A stretch of DNA of 64,000 nt from Stylophora pistillata (lineage: Eukaryota). This document shows, one piece after another, positions 38,582 to 47,238 of this stretch (positions are counted from its first letter, which is position 1; each line of letters opens with the position of its first letter). Position numbers and translations under genes: made by a program. The stretch covers positions 1 to 64,000 of the forward strand of contig NW_019218386.1 of NCBI RefSeq assembly GCF_002571385.2. Reading direction: 5' to 3'. Below the pieces are notes generated by a model that was not told the DNA's origin, did no database searches, and worked only from the letters and a program-made list of their open reading frames with translations.

Positions 38582-39493
38582 TATGGTGGGTGATTACCGT
38601 CATAATTCAATTTTTGATTTTCTGACATAGTATTACATTTTGCATAGTAAAGAATTTTTTGTCTGTTTGAATTTTATGTTGGTTTCATCAATTTTCTGAC
38701 AGAATTCAGAAATTTTCGTCTGATCAAATTTTCGGATAACCTAAACTTTCAATTTTTGGGCTGTGTCAGGTTTCGGGGAGCTTTTCGAATTTTCGACTAG
38801 TTTAGAATACTTCACAACTCCGATTCGTTTCTGGTGAATTTTCTGCCAGTATTTCTAATTTTCGGACACATTCAATTTTCTGCTACAACTTTTTCTCCAG
38901 TTGGCCTGGTGACTACGAGAAACCAGATCGAGGTAATGTTATTGTTGATCCAAGATGGCGGATAGAGTGATGGCGCTTTCTCAAGAAGAGCTGCAATCGT
39001 TCAGATACTTGCGAGAGCTTTGATTATTCGGGAAATTGAAGGAGGAGGGCTTGACCCAAATATAGTGGACGTCTTACACTTTAGGCTGGATTGGCTGCAT
39101 GGTTTAATAGCTCGTCTTGTTCATTTGTATGAAATCGATGAACAAATTGTGTTAACCTAATTGGGGGTGCACGGGATTGCCTTATTGGAAGTCAAAATAT
39201 TTTTGATGTTTCATCACTTGCTACTGCCTTTTGTGGGCAACGTGGACGTCCAAGAAATTCAATTCCCAGAGATCAGCTTGATTTTCTGATCGGTAGTAGC
39301 TTTACTGTTGTCGATATCTCAACTTTGCTAGGTATCAGTGTTCGGACTGTTGGAAGACGCTTGGTCGAGTTTGGGTTGCGTGTGAGATTAACATACTCCA
39401 ACACAGACAACGAAGAACTCGACCAGCTGATTCAAAACATCCTAACTATGTTACCTCGATCTGATTTAATTATGACGGTAATCACCCACCAAA
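38582..39493 (+). mobile_element. Internally deleted DNA transposon, IS3EU-like, keeping a degenerate N-terminal HTH region
   Basis: TIRs TATGGTGGGTGATTACCGTCATAATT (38582-38607) and AATTATGACGGTAATCACCCACC (39468-39490). Frameshifted coding relic from aagATGGCG (~38955) to GQRGRPRNSIPRDQLDFLIGSSFTVVDISTLLGISVRTVGRRLVEFGL. No TSD seen. Confidence 0.7.
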
Positions 39494-40579
39494 GAAGAGA
39501 GCATGAATATCATGTATCACGTGAATCCCCACATCCTCTGCGTCTTCCGTTTCAGTAGCGTATCATCTCGAAACTGAAAATTGTGATGCGAGCGTCATCA
39601 AGGTTCATCGGTCATATCACGCCACATCATCGATCGACCAATCATTGTTCATTAAGGTCAGTTACAAAACGGGAAAGGAAAGAAAATTATTTTAATTTGT
39701 TCCGGCTTGCGAAGGAGAATAGAGGAAGCTACCAGACAAGCTAGTGGTAAGATGAATTTTGTGTTTAAGTGAGCAAATATAGTGTCACTCGATAACAAGC
39801 GAATTGAAATAGAATTATTTTTGTGAGATTTCTGTTCGTTCTTTAACTTGGACTTGGACATAAATCCAAGTACAGACCCCCTCATGCTTGAACGACGAGT
39901 TAATTATTTTTTCCATCGGTCTTCAAAATTATGTAGCATAAACATTCGAGCACGGTAATTAAAATTAGATTTGGCCTGGAAACAATGTACAGAGCGAGCG
40001 ATACAGACGACATCCTTGTCTGCGAATTCCGCTCAGAAAAATTACCTTCAGCATTGTGATTTACGAAAAGCAATAATCTATTAAAGCTTCTTCATTTGCT
40101 GACTAATGATCACATTCTGCAAAAAGTAATTTGGAAACGATGTCTACATTATCACGATTTATAGCCATGGTGGGAGAATCCATTTAAAAGCTAATTTAAA
40201 TGAACGCCTTTACAAAACATATGAAGACTTCCATGTATGTCGATTATAAACAATTTATGTTCTCTTGAGAGTGACTGACTTTCGAAACTTCTTAATCATT
40301 AAAATTTTAACTTCTATGTGCCTCTGCTTGCGAAACTATGATGTCGTGCAAAACAGAAACAACTTTGAAAGCGAAAGATAACGAAGTTATTGATGACGAA
40401 GTTTGATCTCCGGGGTTCGATGTCAATTTTATCATTAGACTCTCAACTATTAATTTCATTTTTTCTATCCAAGAGTGGATCACATGAACCACTTCACTGG
40501 ACACTGCTGCTCATCTCCACTACACCCTTGCCGCTGATCTCATCTCTTTTTCATTCCTTACACACTCTTTCTCAGGAAC

Positions 40580-41842
40580 ATGCTTTTGACGGTCATAGTC
40601 TTCGGTGTTCTTGCCCACTGTTTTTCAAGCTGTGAAGCTGATACTCCTTACACACCAAAAGGAAAAGGAAGTGATGTGGTTGCCGATGTTGTACAGATGA
40701 TCAGTGACTTGGATATATTTCCAACCGATCACAAATTCCTTTGTCGTGTGGCCTGGGTCGAGTCCAAATATGGAACTGCGTCTGGAACTTACAGGCGGTT
40801 TTATTACGGAGGAATTTGGCAGGTAAAGAACTTGGTCGGGGAAGTTGCATATGTACCCACCCTGATAACAGACTCAATTGGGTAATAATGGAGGCGGGAG
40901 GGAGGGGGTATAGTGGGATTCATTTAATTTCCAGAGAGGAATACAAGGGGAGTGGGCATGTGGCATATCAACTCAATTATGATGCTTACTGCTCTCTCCA
41001 ATAGTTTTAAACAAATTGACTTTTCTCATACGCTCCCAATATTCAGGAAGGACTATCACAGTAACAAACTAACTGAAGGTGCGGTCTTTTGTACCCCCTT
41101 ACCCCTCCAAATAGAAATAAAATTAGAAACTCAGGAAATGAAGCACCCCTAAACAGTTACCAATTTAGAAATGAGAGTACTGAAATACATAGTGTATTGC
41201 TGTAAACATGTGAGTGAGTAGCAAGGGCATGATATCAGGTCGAGTTAACAGAACTGACAAATATGTACTTCATTTGATTGGTTGGTCATTCTTGTTATGC
41301 CTCCATGTTGTAGACTCTCGCTGGTGCGGGGTAATGAGAGGCGAAGCCAGAGGGTTTAAGTNGGCATGCAATATGAGCACACGGAACCCCACGCAGACTC
41401 ACATGCTTGCCAGCTCGAATCTCCCGTGCCTCGCCACCCATGACTCAGCGTTGAGGAAAACCTCGCAGGTTATGGCTAACATTTAGGCACCACCTTTTTG
41501 ATAATCCCATTCAAGATACCTTTGTCATAGGTGGACTTCATTGGCTATCGCGAAACAGTTACGCAGCAAGGCCTGAGGAAGTACTGGGACCGAATTAGGG
41601 AGCGACTGCACATAGACTGGCAAAAAACTTCATGGTCAGATTTGCAAAAGCCACTATACTCTGGACTGGCTGCCCGATTATTTCTTGCCAGAATTCCTGC
41701 TCCTATTCCAGCTGATGTTAAATCGCAAGCTCTGTACTGGAAGGAATATTACAACACCTCAGCTGGGAAAGGAACTGTACAAAAGTTCATTTCTGATGTT
41801 AGACAAGCAAGAGGGTGTGCTGCACAACCTCAAAGAGGTTAA
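40580..41842 (+). CDS. Secreted 184-aa protein with lysozyme-like / lytic transglycosylase-like motifs
   Basis: Exons 40580-40822 (CAG|GTAAAG) and 41531-41842 (TCATAG|GTG) join in phase 0. Signal peptide MLLTVIVFGVLAHCFSSCEA. Motifs RVAWVES61KYG, GGIWQVD, YWKEYYNTSAGKGT. Confidence 0.85.
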
Positions 41843-43263
41843 CACTATCATTAAAGATAAAACATGTTCACGTCAGTAAATGGCTCTAGATGGAATTCTC
41901 TAATTTTTTTAATACATTTATTTTTTCCTAATTAAGTTTGGATTTAAGTGTACACCTAATGTTTTTGCCTGGCAATTAGATATTAAACAGTTTTGAAATT
42001 TAACTATGGCCTATTTGCTCACAAGTTCAACTGAAATTTTCTTCAGTTAAGAGCCTCAGCATGCTTGTGTCCAGTGAGCATTGATCATACTTCATTGAAA
42101 TCTCAATTTCCTGTTGTTTACATTCTTCCATATTATAGGAATCTTTGTGTCTCATAACAGATTAGACAAACACTCTTTTATCATTACACACTTATTTTAA
42201 ATCCCCTCTCCAAAAGCTGGAAAGACCAGAAGCACAAAGGAAGAGTACATTAATTGATAATTTTATATTTTTTACCCCATCAAGTGTGGAAGATGAGACA
42301 CTAATTCTCTAGTAGTCTTGCACACATTTTGAAACGTCTGAATTAAGTGAATGTTGAAATTCAAACTTGCCATTGAAGATTCACATCAAAAATAAAACTT
42401 AAGATCAGGGATCATAGAGTACCTTGAGTAATTAAGAGTGGGAAGCCAGAAAAGAGCCAAAGTTTTATCTTACACCAAATTTTATTTTTCAAAACATTGA
42501 AACCTGTGCTAAAAGGGCATGAACTGGACTCCTGGAAGTGTTCATGGAGTGTTAACCAAGTACACATTTTTCTACATTTGTACAACAGTAAGTCAGATAA
42601 GTTGATCATAATCCCAAATACAGCAGAGGGACTGGTCAACATTTTAAGTTTGACCAACTCAGATAGACAAAAATAATTACTTACAGGAATACAAGTTTTC
42701 AAAAGTATGCAAACTAAAACTCAAATTTAAGCCATCTGTTTAACATTGGTTTCATGTAAAAAAAAAAAATTAATTTGGTTTCTACCTTCATTAATAAAAG
42801 TTTCAACTTAAAGGAGAGGTATATGCTATAGTCCCTGAAGACAAACCCTGGTAGTGATTGATAATTACCGCCATTTAAAACTCACCAATAATCAGCAAAA
42901 ATGCAGTGGTCAAACAACAGTTAACTGACAACCTATAATTGGACCAATCAATTTTCTCTTTCTCATATCATACATTTGAATCTGTAAATATAATTATTTT
43001 CTTAAGGAATTAATAAGTTAGAATGTTGGTATCTCGTAAACAATCAGAGACTTCACTCCTTACGGCAGTGCCCTAATTGACGAAAGAATACTCACTGACA
43101 TCTCATCATGAACTTTCCACCCCCTTGTGCTTCCTTGAAATCATGGGGTCCTTTTCTTTAAAGTTCACTTTGAGAATTCAACAAATCTTCAGTAGAAAAA
43201 ATGGTAGAAAAAATTTAGATAGCAGGGCAGGCACTCTATGTGCTCTTGTCAAGTGTTGCTCTG

Positions 43264-46200
43264 TCATGCTTCTGTATACCTTCCACTCATTGTCATTATC
43301 AGATCTTCCATTATGTTAAAACCCTGCAAAAAGAAAAAAAAACAGAGCTGGGTAGAAGAAAAGAAACCTGGAGCAAATATGTGAGTCAATGATAGGTGAT
43401 AAGAGAGCAAATGTGATTTTTTTTTCTTAATTAAAACTGATCTGTTTATACCTTGTTTGCTCCATGTTGAAGAAACGATTGTCCAAAAGCTTCCATCATT
43501 CCTCCAAGTAATGAACCAACACCATAAACATTGATACTACCTCGCTGCTCAAATGATGTCCTACCAAGTGACACAATAAAACATGGTTGGAGAGGGTGAT
43601 CTTTATTACTTAACACCACAGAAAATGCCCTTCTGATCAATGATTCTTCAATGATTCTTAAATGATTATTCAATGATTCTTTAATGATTTTTCAATGATT
43701 CTTTAATGATAATTCAATGATTCTTTAATGATTTTTCAATGATTCTTCAATGATTTTTCAATGATTCTTTAATGATTCTTCAATGATTCTGCCATGATTT
43801 TTCAATGATTCTGCCATGATTTTTCAATGATTATTCGATGATTCTTTAATGATTCTTCAATGACTATTCAATGATTCTTCGATGATTTTTCAATGATTCT
43901 TTTAAATTAATGATTCTTCGATGATTATTCAATGATTCTTCAATGATTTTTCAATCATTGTGATTAATCAATGATTCTTCAATGATTTTCTGATGATTTT
44001 TCAATAATTCTTCAATAACTCTTTGAACAATAACTTTTCAGTGATTGATCAATGATTCTTCAATGGTTTTCCAATGATTCTTCAGTGATCCTTCTTAAGA
44101 CTTTTCCAAGACTTTTCCATGATTCTCCGAGACATACAGGATGAAGAATACTGGCAAAATCAAGAGTGAGGGCAAACAAAAGCAAAATTTTTCACCATTA
44201 ATTTTGTTTAATCTATGCAATTGGGTTTCACTCATCAAGTAGTTTTAAATATGTATCACTATTTAACTTGGGAAACCAAGTCATCAAGAGAATGATAAAA
44301 TGGTGGTTTTGGCTGCACTTTTGCATCCAACAGAAAGTGCCATTTCCTTCTACCTCTTGCATGGTTATTTGCTTCTGAGTACCAGAGAAATTCTATTGTT
44401 TAAGAAGTAAGGTGACATACCAGTCTGGATTGTTTTCACATGCTTTAAAAGTGCTGAACTCTTCTAAGGACGCATATTTGGACCATGTAAGGTTATAACA
44501 GTGAAGACGAAGACATCTTTCTTTACTATTGAGCCATGCTTCCTCTTCTACTTGAATAGCTGGGAATGGACACAACTAGAAATAAAACATTTAACAATTT
44601 TAAGTTTTACCACAAAGGAATTTATTTTTATTGGTGTCTGAAATATTACTTACCATTTGCTTATTCAAAAAGTGCACAACAAAAGCCACAAAAAAATAGT
44701 CTGAAGCACTGTCCCTTTATATCTAATGGTAACAGGACTGAATGAAGTCCAATTTGGCCTGTAATCATACATTACAAGTGATTAACAAAGTTGGACAACC
44801 GCAAAAATGTCTACTTTAACCATCAGCAAATGTAGAGGCAAATTGCTTTTGATTTTTTAATGAACAAAAATGACAAAATATTTAAAATGTTGTATATGCC
44901 AAACCTAGACTTGCAGTGAGGTGCGAGTTCAGACCTAAGAGCCCTGTTTATGAGGAGTATCACATTTGTTGAGATAAAAAATTTTTGTGCAGTTAACCAC
45001 ACAAGATCAATGGTCAACATACAATTGTACTGTTCATGTCTAGCTATAAGTACATACCTTTTTAAAGAAACCTGGCAAAACATTCACACATTCTCCTCTT
45101 CTCAATAAATATTCTTCTCCAGTTTCTGGGTCTTCAAGACCACAAAAATGTAAAAAAGAAAATCAGAACAAAACCAAATTAATCACAGTAAAAACAAAAA
45201 AAAAAGTGAAATTAAGAAATGTAAAATATTACAATCCTCCATTATACAGTTCTCTATACATTTGCTAAAAGTGCTGACAAGGAGAATTTGTTTAACAATC
45301 AAGAGCCTCTTTAGTTGGTGTTGATTATTTCCTATAAATGCCACAACCAGGACAGATAATTATTGTAAGGGAAATTGATATAATTCTGTTGGTCACCCTC
45401 AGGTGTATAAGGATTAACAGTACAAGGCTTTTGTAAAATGTAACGACGACGAACTACCATCAGTTGCATGTGATCGAGATCTTTAATCAGGAAAACATAT
45501 CGATTGGGTATGGCTGGTACATGTATTCAAAGAAATCCTTTTCTCGTTTGTAACTTTTTGCTCCGTGATACTATGTAGAAAATTTATTTAACAAGTCTTC
45601 AATGATGGTACCAATAGAAATTTGTTAACTTTATAGAATAAAATCAGTTTTGGCCATTTGTGATAAACCAGTTTATTTTGAAATTCCTGAGGCAGTATCA
45701 CTATCAAGATGACACACACTCAATCAAATGAACTACAGTCGTTTATTAAAAGGTATTTCAATGTTTGCCCTGATACCAAAGGATATGAAAAATTAATTGC
45801 ATACATATTGTTCAAAGTAAACAGCCCTATTGGAGACTTCAGAAAAGTGGACTACAGCAACCTCTAGTTCACCACTAAATTTTCTCCGATACTTATTGGT
45901 TAAAATTGATCATGTGATGCAATAGTGTTCATCCGTGGAGAGACACTATCAGCCCATAGTGCCCATCTGCAGAAAAAACCCGGATGGATAGTACTCATCC
46001 ATGAAAAAATTTGAATGGTTTGACTGCTGCGAAGTTAGGCAGATCGGTAAAACAGTGACTTGTCAATTCTGACATGTATAACATATTATTTAGCCAATGT
46101 ACAGTTACGAATTACTGACATTTGTGACAGGCTGTATGCATGAATAAATATTTGATTGATCTGCATTTAGTGGGTTTTGACTGTTTTTCAACTGGCACGC

Positions 46201-47027
46201 AAAAGAAAATTTAGTGGTGAGCAATAAAGACAATAGAGCGTTTAGGTCTCGGAACTATCGGTCTGATAGTTGCCCTTTGGATATTTGATGTTCTTAAAAC
46301 TAGCATAATTATTTGCCTTCTCAGGCAAATATTTGTTTTAAGAACATCAAATTTCCACGGGGCAACTATCAGCCGATAGTTCCTCAACAGAAACACTCTA
46401 TTGTTTAAATAGATTACAGCTGTTACCTGTTTTGTGTTGCAACACTGTTATAGACGTCACATTGGAATCTTTACCACAAGTGTACTATTGTTGTGCGTAC
46501 ATGTAAGCACAAGTGTGCACAATAGTGAAAAAAACAGAAAAAGAAGCAGTCACTATCAACTCCTTGTTTTCATGTAGTTGTTCGAAATTCGTTACGTTTG
46601 AGGTCTTATAAGTATTGAAATGTGTACAAAAGTACAGAAATCACAATCTTCAAACACAACATACATGTTGTGCAACGATTTACCTTTTTAGCCATATTCT
46701 AGAATTGATCTTGGAAAGATTTCCGTATAACCCCATACATTAATTATGCATCCATTTCTTAAAGACTAAATGTAAAGGTTTCTTTGCAACACTCGATGCA
46801 TAATTAATGTATGGGGTTACATGGAAATCTTGCCTTTACTTTTACATCTACATTCTTCTGCTAGGAGAAAAAAAAAACCCTAAAATTGTGCTCTTGTATT
46901 TAATAACTGAAATCTGTGCACATGTATGTACGGAAGCGTATTTGAAACAAACCTTTTGGAAGTAAGCATGTATCACTTTCTCGAATGGATGTTTGAAGGT
47001 ATGGCTAATTTCAACATGCCGGACCAT
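43264..47027 (-). CDS. PRELID2: PRELI domain-containing protein 2-like (176 aa)
   Basis: Six phase-consistent exons: 47027-46953, 46484-46427, 45131-45058, 44575-44421, 43560-43452, 43323-43264. Product includes HTFKHPFEKVIHAYFQKY, IQVEEEAWLN, NLTWSKYASLEEFS, ENNPDWTSFEQRG, GFNIMEDL. Confidence 0.88.
43637..44127. repeat. ~12-bp degenerate minisatellite (TCAATGATTCTT)n in a PRELID2 intron
   Basis: Roughly 35-40 imperfect copies visible. Confidence 0.95.
46716..46831. repeat. Inverted repeat, ~37-bp arms (small MITE or hairpin) in PRELID2 intron 1
   Basis: AAGATTTCCGTATAACCCCATACATTAATTATGCATC vs GATGCATAATTAATGTATGGGGTTACATGGAAATCTT. Confidence 0.85.
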
Positions 47028-47238
47028 TACCACAGAGGATCGCTTCCGCCATGAAACAAGAGAGACAAAAAGTCGTGCGATAAGGCACTCACAACAGACC
47101 CTTAGCTAACACCACGACGGTTTTCGTCTTTGTCAACTGAAGCATTAATATATAAACAGCTGTGTAATTGGTCCATTCACCCACACAACAAATCATTCAC
47201 CAATCACAACAAAGCTTATGTCTGTTCCAATATGGCGG
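47028..47238. promoter_or_regulatory. Bidirectional promoter between PRELID2 and the FKBP-like gene
   Basis: Divergent start codons ~210 bp apart; CCAAT boxes (ATTGG 47168, CCAAT 47200 and 47227); ATGGCGG YY1-type motif on each side (47052 minus, 47232 plus). Confidence 0.7.

Follow-up and report, generated by a model that had tools for sequence, protein, structure and literature searches.

A putatively secreted coral protein homologous to a phage protein family of unknown function, and the case for peptidoglycan cleavage

Two kinds of described systems bear on the locus reported here. The first comprises the family 1 lytic transglycosylases (Slt70, MltE, MltC) and GH23 enzymes, which carry the motifs E-S, G-[LI]-x-Q and [AY]-Y-[ND]-x-G in the same order as the coral protein. 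The second comprises antibacterial enzymes that animals have acquired horizontally. Metazoan g-type GH23 lysozymes belong to this class (PMC12855814), and other examples are the T4-type GH24 lysozymes of bivalves, the GH25 ch-type lysozymes and the Dae2 amidases of ticks. Cnidarians apparently lack bona fide lysozymes (PMC12855814), and stony corals and sea anemones are reported to be without the g-type (PMC11576321). Lysozyme-like activity has nonetheless been reported in Actinia mucus, and unpublished data have been mentioned as hinting at "non-conventional" cnidarian lysozymes (PMC11576321).

Here we describe a gene of the stony coral Stylophora pistillata, found in a stretch of 64,000 nucleotides of genomic DNA (contig NW_019218386.1, positions 1 to 64,000; hereafter the window). 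We consider it likely, with a probability of roughly 0.68, that its product is a secreted enzyme that cleaves the glycan strands of peptidoglycan and that was acquired anciently from phages. The activity, the substrate, the place where the protein acts and the direction of transfer are all inferred, and there are no enzymatic data for any member of the family, phage or animal. If acquired in this way, the gene would follow the same pattern as the animal enzymes named above, in which a bacterial or phage wall-degrading enzyme gained a signal peptide and introns and was retained. The present family is distinct from them, with a far wider spread among animals and frequent occurrence in multidomain extracellular proteins. 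No account of the family came up in literature searches directed at it, at its NCBI locus names or at a lytic transglycosylase of corals.

The gene is intact, is expressed and encodes 184 amino acids in two coding exons at 40580-41842 of the + strand. Its features are as follows.

39476..39746, + strand: non-coding 5′ exon, from RNA reads and RNA contig L090; upstream end not determined; donor GT at 39747
39747..40575, + strand: intron of the 5′ UTR, with AG at 40574-40575
40576..40822, + strand: coding exon 1, with the ATG and CDS start at 40580; aa 1-81, ending GGIWQ
40580..40639, + strand: putative signal peptide, aa 1-20, MLLTVIVFGVLAHCFSSCEA; a hydrophobic N-terminus judged by eye, without a predictor
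40760..40765, + strand: codons of E61-S62 (RVAWVES), the candidate catalytic Glu and then Ser; from sequence and conservation
40811..40822, + strand: the motif G-[IL]-x-Q, encoded here as G78-I-W-Q81; from sequence, conservation and hhalign; D83 comes next, in exon 2
40823..41530, + strand: coding intron, 708 bases, GT..AG, phase 0, acceptor AG at 41529-41530; seen as an RNA joint
41531..41842, + strand: coding part of exon 2, aa 82-184 (103 aa) plus TAA
41747..41755, + strand: codons of Y154-Y155-N156; from sequence and conservation
41843..43325, + strand: 3′ UTR, from RNA depth past 42300 and L090; end uncertain

The coding intron begins GTAAAG directly after exon 1, and the joint 40822|41531 occurs exactly as predicted. 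One RNA run shows it in 60 raw reads, of which 59 have the + strand orientation, and three poly(A) RNA runs have it in their contigs (depths 336, 336 and 173). RNA depth is about 45-58 over the exons, as against 0-3.6 over the intron. A natural 184-aa protein assembled from RNA contigs (P0260) is identical to the window protein at 180 of 184 positions (98%) and is continuous across the junction. Exon 2 carries the segments KPLYSGLAARL, IPAPIP and YWKEYYNTSAGKGT. A single N stands at 41363 within the 708-base intron and was left as is.

Upstream of the coding region, a single leader, ending in GAAGCTACCAGACAAGCTAGT, is shared by the loose ends of 29 RNA reads ahead of 40575 and of 7 ahead of 40473; its sole occurrence in the window is at 39725-39745, and contig L090 maps to 39476-39761. 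The seven reads define a minor alternative acceptor after 40473 (AG at 40472-40473), use of which gives a short extra upstream ORF. A spliced-leader origin of this sequence by trans-splicing was considered and rejected, because the leader lies 830 bases upstream in the same window and is followed by a GT donor. Since an in-frame TAG lies 9 nt upstream of the ATG, the CDS stands as first proposed. The initial annotation, made from sequence alone, had thus been right in calling an intact two-exon gene of 184 aa, and is corrected only in having missed one non-coding 5′ exon; the signal peptide that it claimed rests on inspection by eye, although a hydrophobic N-terminus is present in coral and anemone orthologs as well. 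At the other end, L090 maps to 41529-43325 and onward to exons of a convergent neighbour, a six-exon PRELI-domain gene on the minus strand, and antisense RNA reads climb after 41975. Overlap with the 3′ end of that gene makes the end of the 3′ UTR uncertain.

These data bear on the possibility that the gene entered the assembly as contamination from a bacterium or phage, or that it is a chance ORF. The assembly does hold bacterial contigs, for example one (C1404) with a low-GC, Slt70-like ORF. Against contamination, two spliceosomal GT..AG introns are removed in poly(A) RNA, the GC content of the gene (0.41) equals that of the surrounding sequence, the PRELI-domain gene converges on it, and orthologs are found in chromosome-scale assemblies of several corals and anemones. 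On these grounds we reject the explanation, which is all but excluded.

The coral protein is homologous to a phage protein family, phrog_3108, which is annotated as of unknown function. Exon 2 alone matches the phrog_3108 profile with an E value of 1.5e-13 (profile positions 78-156 of 160), and by tblastn it matches 24 phage records. Full-length coral and anemone homologs reach E values between 1e-14 and 1.7e-20 against the same profile, covering its positions 25-155 of 160, and hhalign of a coral/anemone profile against a phage profile gives a probability of 99.25% (E 5.7e-20, 122 columns), pairing VES with AET and GIWQVD with GLTQVD (phage TGLTQVD). For exon 1 by itself, neither tblastn nor PHROGs returned a phage match, and its pairwise BLASTP comparison with phage proteins yielded noise only; its homology is visible only through full-length homologs and profiles. 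The window exons were searched separately, and the full-length and fold work used the proxies P0260 and P0002 rather than the window protein. Among viral contigs, scans with coral-derived patterns found no relatives, whereas a phage-derived alignment did; the genome scan used alignment A6, alignment A4 being too diverse. Sequence searches of Pfam, NCBIfam and the PDB with the exons, the full-length homologs and profiles (A2 and A4) returned nothing meaningful, and no sequence-level tie to any PDB chain was found. The matches in those searches, to N_NLPC_P60 (E 0.11), a glycerol kinase and a designed protein, were rejected as chance. The coral protein belongs to a domain family without a Pfam or NCBIfam name, of which phrog_3108 is the phage branch.

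The homology to phrog_3108 (for example, Gp54 of Klebsiella phage phiKO2 and the protein of phages PMBT28 and K21lambda1) extends over the whole domain. Common to both are E-[ST], G-[IL]-x-Q-[VM]-[DE], an R, I-P and Y-W-K-K-Y-Y-N-T-x-x-G-K-G, and the predicted structures are alike (TM 0.72-0.82). The phage proteins have neither signal peptide nor introns and act either within the cell, together with a holin, or out of the virion, whereas the coral protein is spliced, eukaryotic and apparently secreted; the endolysin-type phage members are merely about 25-35% identical to it. The closest non-animal relatives are instead the C-terminal domains of gp15-slot internal virion (ejection) proteins of marine T7-like phages (P0083, P0096 and L054), with 42-54% identity to animal domains. 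In these phages the domain forms the tail of a virion protein of 850-985 aa. The lytic domain of classical T7 is an N-terminal SLT domain in gp16; it represents a different family and is absent from gp15.

The animal part of the family is extensive: the domain is present in thousands of invertebrate proteins and ranges over at least six phyla (stony corals, anemones, annelids, a brachiopod, molluscs, echinoderms, mites and a fly). In a tree, all 26 of the 26 named animal domains fall with eight phage domains, the marine T7-like ones among them, in one strongly supported clade (100/96), which is itself nested among further phage clades. The most likely interpretation is that the family entered animals anciently from phages, although the direction of transfer is inferred. 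Most metagenomic members of the family lack an organism label, so that neither the breadth of its distribution among taxa nor how often transfer took place is settled. Two expectations of the initial annotation fared well here: resemblance of the C-terminal block to uncharacterised phage proteins is borne out by the profile, tblastn and hhalign results, and the suspected unannotated invertebrate domain proved to be a large unnamed family. The phage or bacterial ancestry that it thought possible agrees with the nesting of all the animal domains in phage diversity. Its idea of a domesticated effector needs refinement, in that this is an old and widespread invertebrate family, neither coral-specific nor a recent domestication.

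The fold of the coral protein is of the lysozyme-like class, a statement that holds at the level of the superfamily only and rests on the model predicted for a coral homolog, P0002 (85% identical; AF2, pLDDT 97.8, pTM 0.92). In a VIA-align search all 50 of the 50 best chains belonged to the lysozyme-like superfamily, with moderate Z scores of about 8: a GH73 enzyme (4qdn) at 8.7, MltE (4hjy) at 8.3 (126 residues aligned, rmsd 3.9), Slt70 (1qsa) at 8.0 (122 residues, rmsd 3.5), and phiKZ gp144 and a GH23 chitinase (3w6b) both at 8.0. The i-type destabilase 8bbu scored 6.5, a salmon g-type lysozyme 5.9 and the Bombyx c-type lysozyme 1gd6 4.7, so that the model predicts a fold nearer to lytic transglycosylases, GH23 and GH73 than to i-type or c-type lysozymes. 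Foldseek against the PDB gave nothing at E <= 0.001, its top, non-significant rows being MltE and Slt; in a library of viral structures the phage members of the family came first, followed by SLT, LT_GEWL and destabilase entries. At the sequence level, Pfam SLT (PF01464) matched neither exon (E <= 10) nor any of six full-length homologs (E <= 1), and Pfam Lys and Destabilase matched neither exons nor full-length homologs. Alignment by hhalign with one bacterial SLT domain was not significant (probability 1.3%), while placing VES on KES and GIWQ on the GLLQ of the Slt70-like sequence. The Asp after the Gln of the coral protein (QVD) recalls the LMQVD of goose-type lysozymes. In sum, the early suggestion that this is not a c-type (GH22) or i-type lysozyme held, on both Pfam and fold scores, and that of likeness to lysozymes and lytic transglycosylases held for the fold at superfamily level, with catalysis and substrate only inferred.

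Conservation was counted over 296 non-phage and 88 phage domain segments, and percentages are given in that order. E61 is kept in 97% and 100%, and position 62 is Ser or Thr in 99% and 100%. Loss of conservation at E61 had been named beforehand as a result that would refute the lysozyme-like reading, and the outcome was otherwise. The corresponding figures are 99% and 92% for G78, 85% and 99% for Q81, 80% and 100% for R130, 97% and 100% for P141, 95% and 95% for W151, 89% and 98% for Y155, and 76% and 100% for N156. Position 83 is Asp in 85% of non-phage segments, and in phages it is Asp in 66% and Glu in 32%. As judged from the exon translations, the window protein has the near-invariant residues E61, S/T62, G65, G78, Q81, R130, P141, Y150, W151, Y155 and N156. 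In the P0002 model, the Glu equivalent to E61 lies at the C-terminal end of helix 21-30. Taking E61 as the counterpart of the lytic transglycosylase catalytic Glu is an inference from motif register and secondary structure, without a residue-level superposition.

An alternative that must be considered is that the protein has lost catalysis altogether and is a secreted protein that binds peptidoglycan or another glycan in pattern recognition, in mucus or matrix, or in the skeletal organic matrix. In favour of this, many animal members have architectures of adhesive or extracellular-matrix type (VWA, MAM, LDLa, EGF), the initial annotation read a neighbouring gene as a candidate secreted acidic matrix protein, and in a divergent paralog on another contig (C204) the Q81 and YYN positions are no longer kept. 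The window gene, however, retains E61, S62, G78, Q81, Y155 and N156; the presence of Glu in 97% of non-phage domains is the pattern expected of an active enzyme; and identities of 64-82% across stony coral and anemone homologs show strong constraint on the whole catalytic core. We consider the non-catalytic alternative unlikely.

The indication of substrate comes from the phage homologs, which occupy two settings: the endolysin slot beside holin and spanin genes, and the C-terminus of internal virion proteins in T7-like phages. PMBT28 and K21lambda1 have the family member immediately ahead of a holin gene (phrog_785, E 6.6e-27), which is followed by one for an Rz-like spanin (phrog_89); the annotation of K21lambda1, with 73 genes, lists no other endolysin. 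A small membrane protein is likewise paired with a family member in phiKO2 (gp53-54-55) and in an Endozoicomonas prophage, and in oyster-associated phages the family member is annotated as an endolysin. It is the phage homologs, and not the coral gene, that fit an endolysin context, next to holin and spanin and, in K21lambda1, without another annotated endolysin. In P0083 and P0096, from T7-like contigs, the domain is at the C-terminus of the internal virion protein in the gp15 slot. Because the phage settings are those of endolysins and of T7-like ejection proteins, they imply cleavage of peptidoglycan.

It is conceivable that the coral enzyme acts instead on chitin, chitosan or another GlcNAc polymer, in the manner of GH23 or GH19 chitinases, the polymer coming from prey cuticle, fungal endoliths or the animal's own chitin. 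Animal domains of the family are often fused to VWA or chitin-binding domains, including CBM_14 in Owenia (P0049) and Haliotis (P0119), and the fold matches include the GH23 chitinase 3w6b and, at Z 5-6, GH19 chitinases. On the other hand, all of the phage contexts indicate peptidoglycan, the coral protein has no chitin-binding module, and the motifs of the catalytic region are nearly unchanged between phage and animal members. Chitin stays possible as a substrate, but we regard this alternative as improbable.

Under the preferred reading, cleavage of peptidoglycan by a secreted coral enzyme, E61 at the end of its helix before Ser would be the general acid in cleavage of the beta-1,4 bond between MurNAc and GlcNAc in bacterial peptidoglycan. 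The substrate groove would be lined by the G-I-W-Q-V-D loop and the Y-W-K-x-Y-Y-N-T-x-x-G-K-G block, and the product could be either hydrolytic, as for a muramidase, or a 1,6-anhydro sugar, as for a lytic transglycosylase. Outside its cells, the coral would probably use the enzyme against bacteria in the mucus or gastric cavity, killing, digesting or controlling them. The family would have entered animals anciently from phages, the closest phage members being putative peptidoglycan-breaching domains of T7-like internal virion proteins, and would have diversified afterwards across invertebrates. If this is true, a phage family now annotated as unknown would gain a function, as would a domain found in thousands of invertebrate proteins, a new case would be added of an antibacterial weapon moved from phage to animal, and a new enzyme scaffold relevant to coral-microbiome biology would be at hand.

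A bolder reading, against which we judge the balance to tip slightly, is that the family is an undescribed class of peptidoglycan-cleaving enzymes and a further type of animal lysozyme, captured early from phages, and that it would account in stony corals and sea anemones for the lysozyme-like activity of mucus. If so, it might constitute a new CAZy family, which early animals would have taken over from marine phages, out of their machinery for ejection or lysis, and a coral tool for shaping the microbiome. It is possible that the coral gene is the "missing" lysozyme of stony corals and sea anemones, its activity being inferred, and the family offers a concrete, expressed candidate for the lysozyme-like activity reported in Actinia mucus. 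An ortholog exists in Actinia tenebrosa.

The gene at 40580-41842 is a resident coral gene, and its product is a member of phrog_3108, a phage family annotated "unknown function", and of an unnamed animal counterpart of that family.

Coding features of the gene
40580 (ATG) to 40822, + strand: coding exon 1, an 81-aa open frame with the C-terminal end GGIWQ, followed by GTAAAG
41529-41530, + strand: acceptor AG, directly before the exon 2 frame
41531 to the TAA at 41840-41842, + strand: coding exon 2, a 103-aa open frame

Joined in phase 0, the exons read as a 184-aa protein in which E61-S62 lies within RVAWVES, G78-I-W-Q81 closes exon 1 and Y154-Y-N156 lies within YWKEYYNT, exactly where the initial annotation had placed these motifs. 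The N-terminus, MLLTVIVFGVLAHCFSSCEA, resembles a signal peptide, as claimed there; this is a reading by eye, inferred from sequence alone.

Four RNA runs were examined over 40300-42300, as raw reads for one and as contigs for three poly(A) runs. The GT..AG joint of 40822 to 41531, which skips 708 bases, is crossed by 60 raw reads, 59 of them in the orientation expected for + strand RNA, and recurs in the contigs of the three poly(A) runs (depths 336, 336 and 173). RNA depth is ~45-58 on both coding exons, compared with 0-3.6 on the intron. Reads ending at 40575 (n=29) and 40473 (n=7) are continued by a common leader sequence, whose single occurrence in the window, at 39725-39745, adjoins a GT donor; the gene therefore includes a 5′ exon outside the coding sequence, together with a minor alternative acceptor. 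This exon leaves the predicted reading frame as it was, because an in-frame TAG lies 9 nt upstream of the ATG. The two-exon coding model thus held; the non-coding exon had been missed. The minor form, with its acceptor after 40473 (7 reads versus 29 for the main acceptor; 40474-40575), adds a short upstream ORF (ATG at 40484, 17 codons, TGA) before the main start codon.

A natural 184-aa protein from four RNA-run contigs (P0260) shares 78/81 exon 1 residues and 102/103 exon 2 residues with the predicted product, uninterrupted across the exon junction. The longest contig encoding it maps to 39476-39761, 40575-40824 and 41529-43325, and then crosses into a PRELI-domain gene on the minus strand, covering its six exons (43267-47075). 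Contamination was considered as an alternative source of the gene and rejected: its introns are spliced in RNA, the PRELI gene shares its contig, and GC content is uniform over the region. The PRELI-domain gene and the lysozyme-like gene are convergent, and the overlap of their 3′ ends explains both the fusion of the two transcripts in RNA assemblies and the rise in antisense reads after 41975.

The exons were searched separately, and full-length natural homologs from these searches were substituted for the spliced product. Neither exon nor any of six full-length homologs matched a family in Pfam or NCBIfam, and no PDB chain was matched by sequence, profiles included. Exon 2 matches phrog_3108 (E 1.5e-13) and, by tblastn, 24 phage records, so that the proposed likeness of the C-terminal block to uncharacterised phage proteins is borne out. 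Full-length orthologs were found by word search in the stony corals Orbicella, Oculina, Acropora and Desmophyllum and the anemone Actinostola, and by a search with the family alignment in Montipora, Porites and the anemone Actinia. Coral/anemone orthologs are 64-82% identical to the coral homolog P0002, used as a proxy, and all have GGIWQVD across the exon junction. For the full-length homologs, the phrog_3108 match extends from profile position 25 to 155 of 160 (best E 1.7e-20), and the coral/anemone and phage profiles align with a probability of 99.25% (E 5.7e-20, 122 columns). The register sets RVAWVES on ETAAAET and GGIWQVD on TGLTQVD; the homology is therefore not confined to the C-terminal block and includes the putative catalytic region of exon 1.

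The "unannotated invertebrate domain" named in the initial annotation is real and large. Against 1.84 billion representative proteins, the coral/anemone profile matched 2617 at E <= 0.001, of which 259 reach E <= 1e-30; among the top 150, many of them long proteins, every E is < 1e-36. Judged by source names, members occur in an annelid (Owenia), a brachiopod (Lingula), a mollusc (Haliotis), echinoderms (Acanthaster, Amphiura), mites (Halotydeus, Medioppia) and a fly (Pseudolycoriella), besides the corals and anemones. Many contain two or three tandem domain copies, or VWA, chitin-binding CBM_14, MAM, LDLa or EGF domains. The coral's own genome (397.6 Mb) has one additional copy (G000:C204:235169-235369; L005:1414-2052, minus strand), which is very divergent, intronless and 212 aa long, with a signal-peptide-like N-terminus. 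It keeps LVES, reads GGLWNVD (Q81 lost) and lacks the YYN block; possibly it is non-catalytic or re-purposed.

For the fold, animal and phage members were aligned in 95 rows headed by P0002 (147 aa, 85% identity over exon 2), and an AlphaFold2 model was built from them. The model (pLDDT 97.8, pTM 0.92) has an all-helical core, with a small hairpin separating the Glu helix from the GIWQ loop. Foldseek against the PDB gave nothing significant, its top rows being MltE, Slt and c-type lysozyme at TM ~0.5. In a Foldseek-independent search of 48,161 chains, all 50 listed rows belong to the lysozyme superfamily.

Structure-search matches to the P0002 model (Z score)
GH73 glucosaminidase 4qdn: 8.7
MltE: 8.3
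Fungal muramidase: 8.1
Slt70: 8.0
phiKZ gp144: 8.0
GH23 chitinase: 8.0
MltC: 7.7
FlgJ: 7.5
phi6 lysin: 7.5
Leech destabilase: 6.5
Silkworm c-type lysozyme: 4.7

Taken singly, a Z of 8 is moderate; the assignment convinces because the list is uniform. The lower scores of destabilase and c-type lysozyme, relative to ~8 for the MltE, Slt70 and GH73 rows, fit the earlier remark that the protein does not look like a c- or i-type lysozyme. A viral structure library ranks unnamed phage proteins first (TM 0.72-0.82) and then destabilase, LT_GEWL and SLT entries, and a protein-language-model atlas agrees. The protein is thus predicted, by way of its homolog, to have a lysozyme-like fold.

Conserved residues, numbered as in the 184-aa product, in 296 non-phage and 88 phage domain segments
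E61: 97% non-phage, 100% phage
S/T62: 99%, 100%
G65: 99%, 91%
G78: 99%, 92%
Q81: 85%, 99%
D83 (acidic): 85%, 98% (D or E)
R130: 80%, 100%
P141: 97%, 100%
W151: 95%, 95%
Y155: 89%, 98%
N156: 76%, 100%

Loss of E61 among homologs would have counted against a catalytic role, and the Glu is kept. The family's motif order is a single, nearly invariant helix-end Glu, S/T, G-[IL]-x-Q ~20 residues on, and [AY]-Y-N-x-x-G near the C-terminus, an order known to typify family 1 lytic transglycosylases and GH23 enzymes. With a bacterial Slt70-like protein, the best hhalign register, which is not significant, sets VES on KES and GIWQ on GLLQ. The family's QVD, with its acidic residue after Q, resembles the LMQVD of goose-type lysozymes. 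The Asp of that motif is considered catalytic; g-type lysozymes keep a catalytic Glu and Asp (PMC11576321). This likeness tilts us slightly toward a hydrolytic muramidase, with a lytic transglycosylase still in play; an action like one or the other is likely, although enzymatic activity is itself inferred. Our main reading, to which we give a probability of about two in three, is a secreted enzyme that would cleave the glycan strands of peptidoglycan with E61 as general acid. There are two main rivals: that the substrate is chitin, as the CBM_14 fusions suggest, or that the protein binds without catalysis. The initial interpretation is supported for gene structure, homology, fold and ancestry; activity, substrate and role remain inferences.

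Three independent gene contexts of the phage relatives point to cell-wall cleavage. The first is the endolysin slot: Salmonella phage PMBT28 and Klebsiella phage K21lambda1 both have the member flanked by the small terminase gene on one side and by a holin (phrog_785, E 6.6e-27) on the other, and an Rz-like spanin (phrog_89) comes after the holin. K21lambda1 is fully annotated, with a holin but without any gene marked as endolysin, making the family member the obvious candidate. A small membrane protein (phrog_27866) is paired with the member in phiKO2 (gp53-gp54-gp55) and in an Endozoicomonas prophage. The second context is that of oyster-associated Zobellviridae phages, where the member is annotated as an endolysin. 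The third is in ejection proteins: P0083 (853 aa) and P0096 (985 aa) have the domain at the C-terminus and fill the gp15 slot of a T7-like structural module, whose order is connector, capsid, tube, nozzle, gp14, P0083/P0096 and a 1514-aa gp16-slot protein; wall-degrading domains are known from the ejection proteins of T7-like phages. Among 185,579 bacterial and archaeal species genomes, a pattern-limited scan returned only 83 loci. Nearly all of these lie in Gram-negative lineages, and those inspected were phage-like, so the family probably belongs to phages and is not part of bacterial housekeeping.

Two phage-side observations may be added. The prophage of Endozoicomonas sp. G2_1 (L125:3609-4800, NZ_JAGHQT010000021.1), from a coral-associated genus, has its member between a phiKO2 gp53-related small membrane protein and another membrane protein, a gene order that may represent a lysis cassette. 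K21lambda1 (Klebsiella phage vB_Kpn_K21lambda1, L178) has genes annotated 2-aminooxy adenylosuccinate synthetase and dATP triphosphohydrolase (31779-34429), which are hallmark genes of phages with 2-aminoadenine in place of adenine.

With 26 named animal domains and 33 phage or phage-like ones, a maximum-likelihood tree, its root not known, supports the phage side of the suggested phage or bacterial ancestry. One clade (support 100/96) holds all animal domains, the T7-like gp15-slot domains and the phage domain L054 (42-49% identical to the animal domains). Two IMG/VR phage proteins make up its sister group (100/98), one with the domain at the C-terminal end of 805 aa (L053), the other a 158-aa single-domain protein (L072); endolysin-type members form two more clades outside these. 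Animal monophyly within the mixed clade has support of 48/41 and is therefore neither shown nor rejected. Because the phage sequences are far more diverse and the animal ones nest among them, a move from phage or prophage into animals is the simpler direction and the likely one; it probably preceded the cnidarian-bilaterian split, and more than one transfer is possible. Many rows of a larger tree carry no organism label, so the family's taxonomic limits are uncertain.

Animal capture of wall-degrading enzymes is known from GH24 in bivalves, GH25, and Dae2 in ticks, and g-type GH23 is a further capture from bacteria or phage (PMC12855814). The kind is therefore known; our literature searches found no description of this family. 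Two recent papers make it timely. According to one, cnidarians apparently lack bona fide lysozymes (PMC12855814); the other reports g-type genes, among cnidarians, from soft corals alone, as well as lysozyme-like activity of Actinia mucus and unpublished hints of "non-conventional" cnidarian lysozymes (PMC11576321). An SLT profile search of the coral's own genome gave two matches, a Slt70-like ORF of low GC and bacterial type and a weak one on a short contig, which is consistent with absence of a g-type lysozyme from this coral. The former is an uninterrupted ORF of at least 648 aa (G000:C1404:19061-22378; L096), GC 0.34 and lysine-rich, resembling a soluble lytic transglycosylase; its contig probably entered the coral assembly from an associated bacterium of low GC.
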